Positions 45,617 to 56,321 of a stretch of DNA of 64,000 bases are shown here, piece by piece. Location: assembly GCA_021613535.1 (NCBI GenBank), contig CP075493.1:2108001-2172000 (forward strand), given 5' to 3'. A program made the translations under genes and the position numbers. Below the pieces are notes generated by a model. The model was given only the letters and a program-made list of their open reading frames with translations. It was not told where the DNA came from and made no database searches. Position 1 is the first letter of the stretch. The number at the start of each line of letters is the position of its first letter. The DNA comes from Adineta vaga (lineage: Eukaryota > Animalia > Rotifera).

Positions 45617-46133
45617 ATGATTGATGTGCATAAAAATAAAATGCGAGACTTTATCAAAGAACTATCGTTTCGACGTCTTGTCGATTCATTAAAATTAACA
45701 CCAAAACGTCGTCTTGTCGAATTTGGAGGTAGTGTTTATGAAATTTTCATATGAAAATTTTGACTATTATTCTATTCAGACATATGGGCCGAAATCTTTC
45801 TCTGGTGTTTTATGACATCAATTGTAGTTCATTTAATTGCTAGTATGATCGCTGTTCGATCTTTACGAAGTCATAAGATTGGACGCTGGTATTCGATCAT
45901 AATTCTTCTCGCTGGAATTATAACTCCAATTATTCCATCAGCATTTACTAGTAAATAATTTCATTTCTCCGAGGAAAAGATCAAACATTGCTTTCTTTCT
46001 AGGTGCATTACTTTCCGCGATATTTTATGCTGCTTCAGTAGAAATAAAACCATTCTTTTGCTTTTTACTTGGAGTTGGACAAACTGGTATTATTCTTTTC
46101 TTTTCTTTCTTGAAAATATTATCAACATTATAA
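45617..46133 (+). CDS. TMEM170: TMEM170 family ER membrane protein, 3 exons (start could be 45641)
   Basis: 'DIWAEIFLWCFMTSIVVHLIASMIAVRSLRSHKIGRW', 'GVGQTG..FSFLKILSTL*'; divergent from IFT80. Confidence 0.85.
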
Positions 46134-47347: not shown

Positions 47348-48091
47348 ATGGATGAATCATCATCGTCTTTGAAAAAAAATGATTCTACTTCAAGTTTAAA
47401 TCCATCGGGACAATTCGCACGTAGTCGTTGGTCACATGTTCTCGCATTAGCTGATCAACTTCGACATAACACTGAAGTTCACAAAAATGAACAATTACGA
47501 CAATATGCTTTTGATATACCACCAGTAGAAAATGATCAACAAACAACATCGGCAGCACATGCAAATCATGTTAAAACATTTGAAAATGATCTTCTCTTTG
47601 CTAAGACTGGTAACTTCAATCTCGATAATTTAAGTAAAAAATTTCTTGAACTAAAACGTACATTCAATCATATGTTGGAATTGAATAAAAATCAAATCGA
47701 ACAAGTTACATTAGCAACAACAATAACACGAACAGCTTTATTGATGGTTTTACGTGCGATTGAATCGATTATTGAAGTATCAAGTAAATGTGTATGGAAA
47801 TTTCCAAATTTCAATTCATTAATATCTTATATACGTTCACGTCAAACGGAATTACCAATACATGGTCAACTTTTAGTCGATTGGTATAAGGCAGCACAAG
47901 TACTTGATTTACTTGTTAATGATCCTGATTGGCTTGTTCAACCTCGAAAAGCATATTGGGCAATACAAGTTTGTGATGAAACATTAACATGGACACGAGG
48001 AGTTTTCAATGAAAATTATCGTACGAAAACGACACGTCGACCTGTATTCGATCGAGAAGAAAGTGTTTGTGTTCCTGAAGTTAAAAACTAA
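47348..48091 (+). CDS. Hypothetical protein, 247 aa, single coding exon
   Basis: Intact ORF with host-like codon usage, preceded by a splice acceptor. No family recognised. Confidence 0.75.
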   Translation: MDESSSSLKKNDSTSSLNPSGQFARSRWSHVLALADQLRHNTEVHKNEQLRQYAFDIPPVENDQQTTSAAHANHVKTFENDLLFAKTGNFNLDNLSKKFLELKRTFNHMLELNKNQIEQVTLATTITRTALLMVLRAIESIIEVSSKCVWKFPNFNSLISYIRSRQTELPIHGQLLVDWYKAAQVLDLLVNDPDWLVQPRKAYWAIQVCDETLTWTRGVFNENYRTKTTRRPVFDREESVCVPEVKN

Positions 48092-48237: not shown

Positions 48238-49258
48238 CTATAGTTTTTCATTCAATGGAGATTTTTTGAATGATCCTGCTGGTTCAGATTCAAATTTCAT
48301 TTTTAAACTTTTTTCTTTTGATGTATTGATCTTTGATGGCGTGGGTGGTACTAGAGATGGTTCCGGAGGTTTTGTAGCATCACTTGTCGGCGGTTTTGTC
48401 ATATCTATAAAACCAGCATTTGCTTCGTCATCTGCTGGAAATACTGTGAAAGCATTAACATAAACTATGGCAGATGGAACCATTACCATTCCACCTACGA
48501 TAAACGAAGTTAATCATCTTTATAAACGATAAAAGGAAAAGAAGGAATTACTTACGATCTTTTGTTTTCAAATGTACGTATCGAACATCGATTAAATGAA
48601 CAAGACCTTTTCAGTTTATCGAAACAGAATGAGTTTTAGATAAAACGAACTATCGTTATTTTTTACCTTCAATTCCTCCACCACTTCCATGAATTTTAAT
48701 CCGACAACCTCGAACGAACGGTTTATTGATGACGAGAAAAATTCCTGATATAAAATTTGTTGCTACTTCTTTCAAAGCGAAACCGATCGTAAAACCAGTT
48801 ATTCCGATACCAGCTAACAAAGGTTTTGTATCGACTCCAAGTGTACCAAGTGTTGTTACAGTAATAATTGCATAAATAGAAATAGCAGCAGTTTTAGAAA
48901 GTAATCTTGCTAGATCTTCATCCTCAATAATATGAGATCGAAGAAAAAATCGTTCAATCGACGGTGAAATCATTAGAAAACGCTTGATCCTTTGCATTGT
49001 AGTGGCAGGTGGTGGTGGTGGTGGTTGAGGGAGAGTCGAAACAAATGGTTCAGCTCCCCATCCAAACCAACGAAAAAATCGTCGGATACGACCTGATGAT
49101 CGTTTTTTTGATGGTTCTTGAGTAATGTATCGATTGGATTGTTGTGGAAAGTAAAGTAAATGATTGTTATTATTATAGGATGCAACAAGACATCGACTAC
49201 CAATGTGAGAAGTATTTAGAGCTAATCGAGATATCATGCATAATGATCGACCATACAT
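48238..49258 (-). CDS. MscS-family small-conductance mechanosensitive channel, 299 aa, 3 exons (49258-48667, 48606-48556, 48494-48238), predicted mitochondrial presequence
   Basis: 'TLGTLGVDTKPLLAGIGITGFTIGFALKEVATNFISGIFLVINKPFVRGCRIKI..GIEG|LVHLIDVRYVHLKTKD|RGMVMVPSA' aligns by eye with MscS TM2-TM3a/b and the beta domain. Exons sum to 900 nt in frame. Confidence 0.88.
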
Positions 49259-50096
49259 ATCAAAAGATTCTTAGTCTAATCTTAAGACAAAAAAAGATTC
49301 AGTTGATGATAGTTATGTAAACTTCTGAAATCATTTTTATTATTCGAAAAGAAATTACAAATGGAAAAAAATCATTTTAATCGTTTCCGGATGCATAGTG
49401 TAACACAAGAAGGCAATTTAATTTATGAATGAATATTATCCTTAATTTAAAGAAAACAAAAGAGCTTTCACTAGTCCGTAATACAAATCATAAAATAACG
49501 ATGAAAAGTGACGTCTTTCAAATGATGGGGTATGACTAAAAACGAGCATGTATGGTCAAGTAACGCAAAGATTAGAAAAAATAATACATTTACTCGATTG
49601 TTTTTCAAAGAAGATTTTGCACATTTCAGATACATTTTACTTGTATTTTTAACCACAAAAATTGAGTTATCTGTAGATTAGAAACTGACGAAAGATGATT
49701 CATCGTTTATTTCTCAAAGTTAAAAAATGTAACATATCTATGCACTCTGAAATACACTTCTATTTTATATAAAAAATCTTAGCTTAATGAATAGTCATTT
49801 CTTGCTTGTATCAAGAAGCAAATAAAATATCACTCGGAACATGTACATTAATTATGGATTCGAGCTAAAAAAGATTAGATGTATAGCGACATGTATGCTT
49901 ATGCGTTCTTTTTAATCACTAGCTTGATAGATCGTTTTAATGTTTGATCAAAGCTCATTAAGATTAAAAACAGAGACCGTGTGCCACTTTCTCAATATAA
50001 AAATTCATCGAGAATAGTACAAAAATTATTTTAACCGGTGGTGCAGTCAATCTGTTCGTAGTATCAATTTGTATAATCAGGAGAGGATCGTTATGC

Positions 50097-50186
50097 TTGA
50101 GAGTGTGGGTGTGGGTGAGAGAAGAAGGATATATCCACACCCACACCCACACCCTCACCCACACCCACTCTACACCCGCACCCTCA
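50097..50186. repeat. Head-to-head TGTGGG/TGAGGG then CCCACA/CCCTCA repeat cluster (telomere-like imperfect palindrome)
   Basis: ttgagagtgtgggtgtgggtgag, ~15-nt spacer, then ccacacccacacccacaccctcacccacaccc...caccctcaa. Confidence 0.7.
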
Positions 50187-51629
50187 ATATATAAAAACAT
50201 TTATTTTCGCCGACTATACTCATTCGAAGCAAAACGACAGAATTTCTTGTTCTTTTCAGAACACTTTCTCGAAAAACATTGATGATAATAGAGTATACTG
50301 CTGATCTATCGCTCATAGTTTAGATCTTATCAGACACTATTGTTCATTCAAATTATCTCGAAATTTGATTTAAAACTTTTGTTGACTGAATTTGTGAATG
50401 ATATTGTTATTTGAAAGATCAAAATTCTAAAAAATACTATACACAATAATATATACGTTTCTATCATAGCTGTCATAATGTCATTACACCGGGTATCCAG
50501 AGCTGAACGTCTAATACCCAACAGGGTAACCAAATACATACTGCCAGACAATCTCGTTACCCAATAAGCAAACAATATCCTTCAGAATCTGAGGAATTTG
50601 AGTGAATTTGGTCGAATGATCTCATTACCCCATGATCGTACTATATTCTTCAAATGCTTTATGAGAGTGATTGATTCGATACATGCAGTCATTCTTTGGT
50701 ATATTTCTCATTATTTTATTGAAGAAAAAAGCTTTTGATGGTAGTTACTATTGATGAGAAAACTTATTAATATAGAAAAATCAATTAAATATATTTAGTA
50801 ACAGTGGCACGTTTATATGGTATGGTATTGTATCAGTCTATCTATAACTATTCCATTTATCTTCTCATATACATCACCAAGAGTGACACGTTTGTATAAG
50901 CCATTGCATATACTGTTTTAAGTTCAAGTAATACTAAATTTTATTTAGTACGTCATCGAGGACCATCACCAAATAATGCTGAATCTGTTTTATTTTCATT
51001 AATTTCATTTAAAAATCGTTCGGAACAAGCTTGTCCTGAGTCAAATAATCCGAGATGATATGGTGGATTTCTATTTATCGCATTAAACGAAATAAAAGTT
51101 CCATCACGTTCTATTCAAATGAAATCCAGCTGTTAGTAATTGGTCATCATCACTTATTATGGGTGTAGCGAAGGCCCGGCCAGTAGGCAAAGCTCAAAAT
51201 GAGGGTGTAGCGAAAATCTGTAATTCTTTAGAGAAGATCCTGTTCTTTCTTCAGAACCCAGCTCGCAATGCAGCGATTAAGATCTCCATTTTCACACAAA
51301 CCTTGCTGGCCAAACGCGACGTCAAATATTCGTACATCAGATATTTCCATAGCAAGAACTACTCTCCGCATCAGTGTTGTTAAGCATTGACTATAACCCA
51401 ATTCATCCTAATTCCTCAATTTCTGAAAGATACACTGCTCTATTTTAAGAAGGATACCCAGCGTAATGGTATTATGACATCACTCAGATATTTTAATGAT
51501 ATATAAATCATTCGAATCGATATGAAATGAAAGATTATAATATACTGACTCTTTTTTCTTTCCAACCACGAAAAAGTAAATTCATGATTAAAAAACGAAA
51601 ATCAGATGTATATGAATGTTTGTTCAACA

Positions 51630-52735: not shown

Positions 52736-54182
52736 GCTCAACATCATTATTTATGTGCAATATTGATGAAAATGAACAAAATTGCATAAATAGAAAATTA
52801 TTTTGCATCGTCTTAATTATATATTAATGGAATATAACAAACGAGATTTCTTTCTAGATATATACAGTACATAGTTTCAATTATTTTATTACAGTTAGAA
52901 GTGAACAAAATACTTTACATATTTTCTTCTTTTATTATTCACATAATTCTTTATACTACTATTCAATTCAATTCCATCATTTATAATTAAAAACTCTGAT
53001 TTTAATGTCAATATGATTCTATCCATACTTAGAAAGTCGATACTTATTCACCTTCGATCATAATTATGAAATTAATTAAATGAATTTGTTAACTTATGTA
53101 AATTCTTTCGAAGATCGTTAATCTAATATCAGTAATGCATTAATAATTATAACAACGTTTAAATATGAGTCATGTGAATATTTCATCATAGATAAAAAGC
53201 TTTTCTTGAGTGTTCTTTGTTGGAAAAGATTTGATAAGAGAGCGAAAAAATAAAATTTTAATTGAAATGAAAATATTTTTCAATGTCTTCTTATTCTCCG
53301 ATTGATAAAACTCATTTGAAATTCTTAACGAGTTGAATATTTTCTATTTCATTTTTGTTATTATAGGATGAAAATATAATCAAGAATTTTCTCTTTTTTC
53401 TATGAATTATCTAAAAATGTTCGATAAAAAGAAATATTTGACAATTTAATTCAAAGTTAGTTTTTTATTTTGAAATAAATGAAATCTTGAAAACAAATTA
53501 TATGACAAACAGAAAATTTACTTTTATCGAATTGTTCGTTTTTTTAGATATACGAAACTTTCCACGTGGAATTTTAGACGATAACAACAAGTTTTGTATC
53601 GTTACTTTAGAAAAAAACATTTCATGTCTTTTCTTTGCATATAAAGAGAAATATTTATTATTTCATTATAAATTTGATTAATTTTCCTAGGAAACATAAA
53701 GTAAATCATCAAAGTTCTAGATAGTTTATCCATGTTCAGGATAATGTAAAAAAAATCTAATTTTATGAATTGATTTATATACTAAAAAACTAATGAGAAT
53801 ATTCATTATTCTACTGCTTGTTCTCAAATTAATATTTATTATATAAAGATGAAAAGATGTTACTTGAACTGTATATATTATCATCGATTTATAATGTATC
53901 TGTTGATATAAACAAAAAAGAATTTTTTTCCAACTTTCAAGTCGTCATGTATTAGTAAAGACTAAGAACAAAATGATAAGAAACTTGTCTTCGTTACTTT
54001 TGTTTTCACTTTTATCATATTTGTTTTCGTCGATTTATTCAAGTGTCGTTAAATTGATAACAATAAAAAGTTATATGAAAAGAAGAAAGACTTACAAAAG
54101 TAGCATCTTTTCTCTACTCTCTCATTATAATAACTTCTTCAACTAATTTTACACTACAAAATTCGCATTAGAAACAAAGTTA

Positions 54183-56321
54183 ATGACAAGTAGCAAATCA
54201 ACATCAGTTTCAAAGGAAACACATAGACGTCATCGTCGTCTTGATATTCAAAAGATCCAAAATGTGCTACTTATATGGTTAGATAGCAACATCGATGACA
54301 ATAACGAGGATTGTCAAAATACCATGACACAACTTCGACATATCGTCAACGATCTGAATATTTATACAGATGGTGATAGATGCATTCAATTCATTGAAAC
54401 CATCAAAGATCGTAAAGGATGTATGATTATTTCAGGTTCACTTGGACAGCTTATTGTACCTCAGGTACATGACTTGTCTGAAGTGGACTCCATTTTCATC
54501 TTCTGTGGCAACAAACAACGACATGAAGGATGGGCAAAAGAATGGCCAAAGATCAAGGGAGTCTTCACAGATATCAAACCTATATGTGAAGCTCTCAAAC
54601 AAGCAGCAGCACAATGTGAACAAAATGCTGTATCAATGAGTTTCGTGTCATCTGGCAAAAAGTTGGATCAACTAGATCCTTCTTTCATGTACACTCAGAT
54701 CCTCAAGGAGATCATAATGACCATCAAATTCGACGACACACATATTCGAGATTACGCCAATTATTGTCGTGATGGTTTTAATGATAACAAAGAAGAGTTG
54801 AAAAAAATTAAACAGTTAGAGCGGCAATATCATAGTAGAACACCTATCTGGTGGTATACTTATGAATGTTTCTTATATCCAATGCTCAATCGTGGAATTC
54901 GAATGATGGATGGCGACATCATGACACGAATGGGTTTCTTTATTAATGATCTACATCGACATATCGAATCCGTGCATGAAGAACAACATATTGATCATGT
55001 TTTCACAGTTTATCGTGGACAAGGATTATCAAAGGCAGATTTCCATCAACTAAAGCAAACAAAAGGTGGATTACTATCATTTAACAACTTCTTATCCACC
55101 AGCAAGGATATAGATGTTTCACTTTTATTTGCCAAAGAGAATATTAGTAATCCAGATTTGGTGGCAATTTTATTCGTAATGACAATTGATCCAAAACAAT
55201 CAACAACAACATTTGCATCAATTCGTCATCTTAGTGCCATTGAGGATGAGGATGAAGTGCTATTTTCAATGCACAGTGTGTTTCGTATTCAGGATATCAA
55301 ACAAATGGGTGGAAACAATAAACTCTTCGAAGTGAGTTTGACACTGACCAGTGATAGTGACAAAGATTTACATGCACTGACTGAGCGCATACGAGAAGAA
55401 AGTTTTCCAAACTCGAGAGGGTGGTACAGATTGGGTTTAGTACTAACTAAACTGGGTCAAAATGATAAGGCTGAAGAGATTTATGAAATGCTACTTGATC
55501 AAGCAACGAAGGAGAGTGACAAGGCACCAATTTATCATCAACTTGGTTGGATCAAAAACAATCGAGGAGAATATGAAGAGGCAATTGGATTCTATCAAAA
55601 ATCACTTGCTATCTATGAGAAAACTCTTTCTCCTCAAGATCCTAGTTTGGCTTCATCTTACAACAACATCGGTTTGGTGTATGGCAAGATGGGTGACTAT
55701 CCAAAAGCACTTTCATCTCTTGAGAAAGCCCTTGCAATTTGGCAACAATCACTTCCTCCAAATCATCCTGATTTGGCTTCATCTTACAACAACATCGGTT
55801 TAGTGTATTTCAACATGGGTGACTATCCAAAAGCACTTTCATCTCATGAAAAAGCCCTTGCAATTAGTCAACAATCACTTCCTCCAAATCATCCTGATTT
55901 GGCTTCATCTTACAACAACATCGGTTTAGTGTATTTCAACATGGGTGACTATCCAAAAGCACTTTCATCTCATGAAAAAGCCCTTGCAATTAGTCAACAA
56001 TCACTTCCTCCAAATCATCCTGATTTGGCTTCATCTTATGGCAACATCGGTTTGGTGTATGGCAAGATGGGTGACTATCCAAAAGCACTTTCATCTCATG
56101 AAAAAGCCCTTGCAATTTGGCAACAATCACTTCCTCCAAATCATCCTGATTTGGCTTCATCTTACAACAACATCGGCGCAGTATATGAAGCCATGAAGAA
56201 CTATTCAAAAGCCTGTTCATTTTATGAGCGTGCTGTACAAATTACAGAAAAATCCTTGCCTTCAGGACATCCTAATCTTCGAATGTATAGAAATAACCTT
56301 GCAGACATGAAAAAGAAATAA
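54183..56321 (+). CDS. Mono-ADP-ribosyltransferase (R-S-E class) with N-terminal alpha/beta domain and C-terminal 42-aa TPR array; intronless, 712 aa
   Basis: 'VYRGQGL', 'FLSTSKD', 'EDEDEVLF' catalytic motifs; repeats 'HPDLASSYNNIGLVY..MGDYPKALSSHEKALAI'. Confidence 0.9.
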   Translation: MTSSKSTSVSKETHRRHRRLDIQKIQNVLLIWLDSNIDDNNEDCQNTMTQLRHIVNDLNIYTDGDRCIQFIETIKDRKGCMIISGSLGQLIVPQVHDLSEVDSIFIFCGNKQRHEGWAKEWPKIKGVFTDIKPICEALKQAAAQCEQNAVSMSFVSSGKKLDQLDPSFMYTQILKEIIMTIKFDDTHIRDYANYCRDGFNDNKEELKKIKQLERQYHSRTPIWWYTYECFLYPMLNRGIRMMDGDIMTRMGFFINDLHRHIESVHEEQHIDHVFTVYRGQGLSKADFHQLKQTKGGLLSFNNFLSTSKDIDVSLLFAKENISNPDLVAILFVMTIDPKQSTTTFASIRHLSAIEDEDEVLFSMHSVFRIQDIKQMGGNNKLFEVSLTLTSDSDKDLHALTERIREESFPNSRGWYRLGLVLTKLGQNDKAEEIYEMLLDQATKESDKAPIYHQLGWIKNNRGEYEEAIGFYQKSLAIYEKTLSPQDPSLASSYNNIGLVYGKMGDYPKALSSLEKALAIWQQSLPPNHPDLASSYNNIGLVYFNMGDYPKALSSHEKALAISQQSLPPNHPDLASSYNNIGLVYFNMGDYPKALSSHEKALAISQQSLPPNHPDLASSYGNIGLVYGKMGDYPKALSSHEKALAIWQQSLPPNHPDLASSYNNIGAVYEAMKNYSKACSFYERAVQITEKSLPSGHPNLRMYRNNLADMKKK
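55647..56176 (+). repeat. 126-bp near-identical tandem coding repeats (4+ units)
   Basis: ttggcttcatctta recurs at 55647, 55773, 55899, 56025 and 56151. Confidence 0.95.

Follow-up and report, generated by a model that had tools for sequence, protein, structure and literature searches.

Bdelloid rotifers possess a mini-MscS channel that is a native, selected and pan-bdelloid exception to the published view that MscS-like channels are absent from animals. In Adineta vaga, the gene occupies positions 48238-49258, minus strand, of the window (the entire 64,000-nt stretch of DNA that was analysed). We consider it moderately probable that this expressed gene descends from one transfer that took place before bdelloids radiated, with a Rozellomycota-type eukaryote as its donor, and that its product acts as a mitochondrial volume/stress valve. 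To an initial annotation made from the sequence alone, the present analysis adds a probable eukaryotic donor, a double-Phe gate, a predicted non-inactivating Leu (as in TcMscS C66L) and two tail motifs found in bdelloids only. A literature search, incomplete in coverage, returned no paper linking MscS to rotifers; the term MscS appears neither in the supplements of PMC11258130 or PMC4632278 nor in the accessible portion of those of an A. vaga desiccation study (PMC10809525). The surprise is tempered because bdelloids carry many foreign genes, the Pfam labels were already public and one A. vaga MscL is present in a published supplement.

Gene structure and expression

The channel gene comprises three exons (49258-48667, 48606-48556 and 48494-48238) and encodes 299 aa. 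Exon 1 (48667..49258, minus strand; aa 1-197 plus 1 nt) carries the predicted presequence, an amphipathic helix, the N helix, TM2, TM3 and the start of the β-domain; exon 2 (48556..48606, minus) continues the β-domain; and exon 3 (48238..48494, minus) contributes its end, a bdelloid-specific tail (aa 235-299) and the stop codon. Both introns are GT-AG: intron 1 (48607..48666, minus; 60 nt) has a position common to the second A. vaga copy, on contig C4, and to Didymodactylos, while intron 2 (48495..48555, minus; 61 nt) is present in the C4 copy and absent in Didymodactylos. The 299-aa reading is the longest among all enumerated two-intron models and is letter-identical to A. vaga I4U23_000596 (P0001). 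When the genome (100.8 Mb in six contigs, with the window on C1) was searched exon-wise with the PF00924 profile, nothing rose above threshold because the introns split the domain.

RNA and DNA contigs were compared over 2,201 letters at the locus. Three probable RNA runs, which come from three studies, yielded contigs in which both introns are exactly skipped, and no intron-skipping contig was found in the DNA run at the same locus; these RNA contigs show junctions and carry no expression level. The initial annotation had read a spliced 299-aa MscS frame from the letters and named RNA-seq junctions as a check; database identity and the junctions from all three studies bear it out.

Where does the mRNA begin? 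One contig from one run, X1-5, stops at 49282 with nine loose letters, which together with the genomic AG are identical to the final 11 nt of an SL-type exon that recurs in the genome. This exon is present in 54 genomic copies versus 2 for the control, followed each time by a GT donor and then a conserved tail of ~90 nt. Bdelloids are known to place a 23-nt leader, derived from SL RNAs of ~100 nt, on more than half of their mRNAs (PMC1925144). On the basis of this one contig, the channel mRNA is leader-trans-spliced 22 nt before the ATG at 49258: the acceptor AG (49281..49282, minus) follows a pyrimidine tract, and the 22-nt 5' UTR (49259..49280, minus) lacks an upstream ATG. Because the leader is joined there, ATG 49258 is the first start codon. 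As to the SL-type RNA gene itself, the 54 copies are spread over C1-C6 (e.g., L016-L021), and many of them form divergent pairs separated by about 168 bp.

IFT80 and TMEM170 (45773-46130) lie near the channel gene; its immediate neighbour is an unannotated, transcribed, intronless 247-aa ORF (47348..48091, plus strand), arranged tail-to-tail, which is context and not part of the channel. One RNA contig spans the 3' ends of both genes. The ORF belongs to no Pfam family and has no match in the ESM Atlas; it has copies on C4 (60% identical) and in Didymodactylos (47%), always tail-to-tail with MscS, and a weak third match on C6. Elsewhere in the window, a 724-aa frame is open at positions 54147-56318 (plus strand), in which TPR repeats come after an ADP-ribosyltransferase-like domain (PF03496); the inverted GT/CA-rich repeat at 50100-50190 is short and may mark one end of a small mobile element.

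Channel architecture

Two Pfam profiles match the 299-aa protein above their cut-offs: PF21088, the TM2/TM3 pore module, at aa 125-163 (30.1 bits; cut-off, 23.1) and PF00924, the β-domain, at aa 165-223 (31.6 bits; cut-off, 20.2). The MscS pore and β-domain recognized in the initial annotation are thereby confirmed by the profile search it had proposed. Hydropathy agrees with its further claim that a hydrophobic TM1 is missing: over the residues that precede 116, all 19-residue windows stay at or below 1.2. The α/β cage family gave no Pfam match in the protein at E up to 1, and the tail is unstructured in the monomer model. The protein thus departs from the EcMscS type, defined by a membrane-spanning TM1 and a C-terminal α/β cage, and conforms to the TcMscS type: a short basic N helix, TM2, a kinked TM3 and nothing beyond a β-domain. 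By sequence, its closest PDB entry is TcMscS, at E 1e-20 versus about 1e-9 for EcMscS (TcMscS residues 5-158 aligned), and TcMscS structures are the best fold matches in Foldseek (TM-score by target, 0.67); the ESM Atlas, queried with the channel protein, returned generic MscS clusters only.

In the monomer model, the core reaches a pLDDT of about 90-95 and consists of short helices (87-108), TM2 (114-139), TM3 (145-178) and a five-strand β-domain. The short N helices (48935..49000, minus) match the TcMscS N helix and stand in place of TM1; TM2 (48842..48919, minus) is delineated by Pfam, hydropathy and the model alike; and the pore helix TM3a/b (48725..48826, minus) bears the putative gate F156/F160 and the kink L162, with the outer-pore D143 just before it. 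Upstream, an amphipathic basic/aromatic helix with an RRFF motif (aa 56-65; 49064..49093, minus; helix 58-64 in the model) has the top hydrophobic moment in the protein.

F156/F160, L162 and D143 are invariant in alignment A4. Mapped onto TcMscS, D47 and F64 are kept as D143 and F160, whereas A60 corresponds to F156 and C66 to L162, and L97 aligns to a gap within a Gly-rich loop of the bdelloid channel. The single-Phe gate (A60/F64) and the L97 cytoplasmic constriction of TcMscS are, therefore, not found here. Double hydrophobic gates are usual in EcMscS, MSL1 and MscK; in TcMscS, C66L abolishes inactivation and raises sensitivity, and smaller residues at L97 raise conductance (PMC12334622). 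By analogy, the bdelloid channel is predicted to combine a non-inactivating Leu with a second bulky gate ring at F156.

The initial annotation had described a P/K/S-rich tail replacing the cage. The composition stands (28 of the 65 residues at aa 235-299 are P, K or S), as does the unmatched cage, but the tail is not merely low-complexity because it contains two conserved motifs. One, of the LKMxF..EPxG type (aa 278-288; 48274..48306, minus), is present in 13/13 full-length bdelloid proteins tested, that of Didymodactylos among them, and in no non-bdelloid relative compared; a possible role of this motif is to close the heptamer at its lower end.

Copies, orthologues and selection

Searches with the PF21088 profile and the protein query found exactly two copies in the genome. 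On C4, the second copy (P0046) keeps both introns and lies in a collinear block of IFT80, TMEM170, the unknown ORF and MscS. At a dS of about 0.9 between the two copies, dN/dS is lowest for the core (0.107), against 0.33 for the tail and 0.41 for the first 47 residues; the channel gene is under purifying selection. Orthologues, found in every named bdelloid genus, occur in A. steineri, Rotaria sordida, R. magnacalcarata, R. socialis, two Silwood species and Didymodactylos carnosus, and both copy types are present in Adineta and Rotaria. The D. carnosus orthologue has intron 1 and the tail-to-tail neighbour in common with A. vaga, across the deepest known bdelloid split (PMC7943196). No other animal is among the named matches listed in three homology searches.

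Two database entries turned out to be misleading. A “LIM-MscS fusion” in Didymodactylos (L010:8001-15415, P0091) is a gene-model join, the MscS part having its own in-frame ATG and presequence-like N-terminus. A “Nosema granulosis” match (NGRA_3428, P0009), on a contig of 1.2 kb, is 92% identical to the exon-1 core and ends at intron 1; it is almost certainly bdelloid DNA in a microsporidian assembly.

The A. vaga genome has both bacterial-type valve families, MscS and MscL. For MscL (PF01741), seven matches exceed the cut-off, at C2:4255203-4256692, C3:10827442-10828879, C5:260701-261084 and C6:5021323-5023208; three of the loci are tandem pairs, and one match has an internal stop.

Origin of the channel

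Outside bdelloids, the closest proteins have a core identity of 55-65%, compared with 35-40% for kinetoplastid-like and bacterial ones. The named nearest are Mitosporidium daphniae MDAP_000930 and Paramicrosporidium saccamoebae PSACC_03441; further relatives come from uncultured, compact eukaryotic contigs with BUD31, CCT and GWT1 neighbours as in Paramicrosporidium, and because of this synteny we treat them as Rozellomycota. The Mitosporidium gene has other neighbours than that of Paramicrosporidium. On Rozellomycota-type contigs (L005, L006, L007, L008, L012), BUD31 and MscS are kept as a head-to-head pair, with CCT, GWT1 and homeodomain neighbours.

In a tree of 45 rows, from which fragmentary rows were left out and in which bacterial-like and kinetoplastid-like rows were labelled by features or motif, bdelloids are monophyletic (99/98) and group in a eukaryotic clade with the kinetoplastid-like rows, apart from bacterial short MscS (100/99); rozellids come out as their sister with support of only 83/80. 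AU tests do not reject bdelloids with bacteria (p 0.137), with kinetoplastid-like rows (p 0.271) or with the Mitosporidium side (p 0.384); the tree that keeps all rozellids together and bdelloids outside is marginally rejected at p 0.046, a value to which rows without a species label may contribute. Two sequence characters appear to point to the Mitosporidium side: the loop HGxGGG(I/L)EG, found in 10/217 non-bdelloid proteins, all of them Mitosporidium-side, and an RRFF-like amphipathic helix in eight non-bdelloid proteins, seven of which are from the loop-motif set (it also occurs in the full ORF of L007). Taken together, a rozellid source of the transfer is likely. A bacterial donor was considered and set aside, given 36-40% identity and a separate branch for bacterial short MscS, although the AU test did not reject bdelloids joined to bacteria (p 0.137); a third homology search returned mostly bacterial proteins and no new named eukaryotes among the matches listed. 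The initial annotation had proposed a domesticated foreign channel and a phylogeny with kinetoplastid and bacterial sequences as a check. An integrated, spliced, selected gene with foreign relatives stands, and its kin are eukaryotic (Rozellomycota) rather than bacterial, with donor-clade support at 83/80 and AU tests at p 0.046-0.384.

Could the gene nonetheless be a contaminant or a gene-model artefact, or have come by another route? Bdelloid assemblies are rich in foreign genes, and rozellid-like parasites can associate with rotifers; rozellid sequences have been obtained from a putative rotifer body, an assignment about which the authors state doubts (PMC10470594). Yet the A. vaga gene sits on an 18-Mb chromosome contig between IFT80 and TMEM170, and C4 holds its collinear copy. 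Its introns are of host size, its GC3 is 0.19, its mRNA receives the host's spliced leader, and seven named species have it; we regard contamination or artefact as a negligible prospect. The initial annotation had argued the same from the two host-style introns and the metazoan neighbours, and the C4 copy and the leader agree. A donor among other eukaryotes (a stramenopile or protist), or vertical descent of an ancient mitochondrial mini-MscS lost in all other animals, is distinctly unlikely: the family is broad in eukaryotes, the AU tests are low in power, and an Ectocarpus fasciculatus contig sequence falls, with many others, within the same tree cluster, but the top identities occur in just one rozellid subgroup, as do both shared characters, no other animal is among the named matches listed, the tree with bdelloids outside rozellids is marginally rejected (p 0.046), and vertical descent would need many losses. 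The Ectocarpus contig (CAXNAF020000769, L013), which carries the family member, has a single called gene and may represent a contaminant organism.

The N-terminus and a probable mitochondrial location

The predicted presequence (aa 1-45; 49124..49258, minus) contains no D/E and four K/R, the first acidic residue being E48, in agreement with the ~45 acid-free residues noted in the initial annotation; its amphipathicity is moderate (0.44), and an R-3 type site, R43-Y-I-T, lies at its end. Composition and motif tests both find the features expected of a presequence, namely an acid-free, basic/hydroxylated segment with an R-2/R-3 motif. Of the 48 bdelloid N-termini compared, 88% are free of acid in aa 1-30, and 46 (96%; shuffles, 21%) contain a relaxed R-3 motif, mostly at positions 34-45. 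For rozellid-like N-termini, the corresponding values are 70% and 46% (shuffles, 11%), and for bacterial ones 7% and 10%; as the relaxed motif was chosen after inspection and the sequences are related, these figures express conservation rather than independent trials. Rozellid relatives have classic R-x-(Y/F)-S ends, a presequence-like N-terminus being common to them and bdelloids; Didymodactylos MscS has its own similar N-terminal extension, and so do many other eukaryotic members, while a separate clade of the family has signal peptides.

These features suggest that the presequence is cut near residue 45 and directs import into the matrix, and the bdelloid mini-MscS is quite likely mitochondrial. 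The mitochondrial-type presequence claimed by the initial annotation thus gains a conserved cleavage motif, the same features in the nearest relatives and a leader-defined 5' end, all pointing the same way at the level of sequence. The family of presequence-bearing mini-MscS proteins is widespread in eukaryotes and apparently undescribed. A broader, tentative reading, to which we give slightly less than even weight, is that many eukaryotes carry such a channel in their mitochondria, that TcMscS was re-targeted, that animals lack the family, and that bdelloids regained one from a rozellid parasite and added a new C-terminal module; animal mitochondria would in this way have come by a working stretch valve of bacterial type.

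Proposed mechanism and its rivals

In the preferred model, the donor would already have used the channel as a nucleus-encoded mitochondrial protein. The presequence would take the bdelloid precursor to the matrix and be cleaved near residue 45, and the TM2-TM3a hairpin would then enter the inner membrane from the matrix side, leaving both ends in the matrix, the equivalent of the bacterial cytoplasm. In MscS topology, the two ends of the hairpin face the same side when TM1 is absent; because of this, matrix import followed by insertion from inside fits. Seven subunits would assemble around an axial, cage-less pore; amphipathic N helices would anchor it, and two Phe rings, pore lipids or both would close it. 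As the matrix swells, membrane tension would rise and open the pore, ions and small osmolytes would leave, and the potential would fall. Precedents exist for both halves of this scheme: TcMscS shows that the minimal architecture forms a tension-gated heptamer of about 480 pS (PMC12334622, PMC8282336), and plant MSL1, as cited in PMC8282336, is an MscS-family channel that works in mitochondria, reportedly limiting swelling and lowering the potential under stress. The valve envisaged would serve organelle volume and stress in general and would not be specific to desiccation. The initial annotation had invoked desiccation and rehydration; this specific role is unsupported because the obligately aquatic, non-desiccating R. 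magnacalcarata and R. socialis keep full-length copies and because the probable donors already had a presequence. A link of the channel to desiccation is possible.

Two rivals accept the foreign mini-MscS and differ on what it does. One places it in the plasma membrane or the vacuole/ER, its N-terminus being no functional import signal in bdelloids. TcMscS does reside in the contractile vacuole and plasma membrane (PMC8282336), the bdelloid N-terminus is only moderately basic with its four K/R, and freshwater animals need osmotic control at the level of the cell; but the acid-free N-terminus and an R-x-(Y/F/H)-L-type site at aa 34-45 are kept in bdelloids despite a dN of 0.36, Didymodactylos has its own similar extension, the rozellid relatives have classic ends, a hydrophobic signal peptide of the kind seen in the separate clade is absent, and TcMscS itself lacks a presequence. 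We regard this location as unlikely. The other rival keeps the protein in mitochondria and denies it tension gating, making it either a heptamer that shapes or scaffolds membranes, the bilayer being bent by its thin TM domain, or a small leak that is always open. It draws on the strong bilayer deformation by TcMscS-type channels, on two Phe rings that may seal the pore, on the extra amphipathic helix and conserved tail, and on the “new function” proposed for compact microsporidian MscS2 (PMC11262690). It is quite improbable, given that all TcMscS pore and gating positions are kept or substituted as in working channels (D143, G159, F160, L162) and that a double hydrophobic gate is normal for EcMscS, MSL1 and MscK.

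If the bdelloid channel is mitochondrial, it would amount to a minimal inner-membrane valve, gated by tension and already suited to the animal import machinery. It would then give direct access to the sensing and relief of matrix swelling, and might serve as a tool in other animal cells. At three tested gating positions it is a natural variant of TcMscS, and it may be a case of eukaryotic transfer from a parasite lineage to an animal.

Comparison with known systems

The closest characterized system is TcMscS (PDB 9BGQ/9BGT/9BGU; PMC12334622, PMC8282336), which belongs to the same eukaryotic clade, is 32-34% identical, has an N helix for TM1, TM2-TM3a/b and a β-domain with no cage, and keeps the outer-pore Asp and the gate Phe. 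Unlike TcMscS, the bdelloid protein has an 85-aa N-terminal extension with a predicted presequence and an extra amphipathic helix, F156/F160 in place of A60/F64, Leu at the C66 position, a Gly-rich loop without the L97 constriction and a longer tail with two conserved motifs; TcMscS is located in the contractile vacuole and plasma membrane (PMC8282336) and carries no presequence. Rozellomycota mini-MscS resemble the bdelloid channel in their 55-65% core identity, presequence-like N-terminus and identical gate residues, and Mitosporidium-side members also in the loop motif and RRFF-like helix; they differ in being intronless at the loci seen, in ending soon after the β-domain without the bdelloid tail motifs, and in gene neighbourhood.

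Microsporidian MscS2 (PMC3879972, PMC11262690), from the sister lineage of the probable donor, is likewise compact, cage-less and heptameric, but has lost TM1 and perhaps TM2, is described as a bacterial transfer and was not among the matches listed in the homology searches. Might it descend from the presequence-bearing family rather than from bacteria? We raise this as a question. Escherichia coli MscS is homologous in TM2/TM3 and the β-domain (E about 1e-9), and differs in having TM1 and an α/β cage with side portals and in lacking a presequence. Arabidopsis MSL1 combines the MscS pore and β-domain with a double hydrophobic gate and mitochondrial targeting, as the bdelloid channel is predicted to do, but is distant (E 4e-5), is much longer with chains of 428-497 aa, and keeps the cage as other MscS-like channels do; the two likely reached mitochondria independently.
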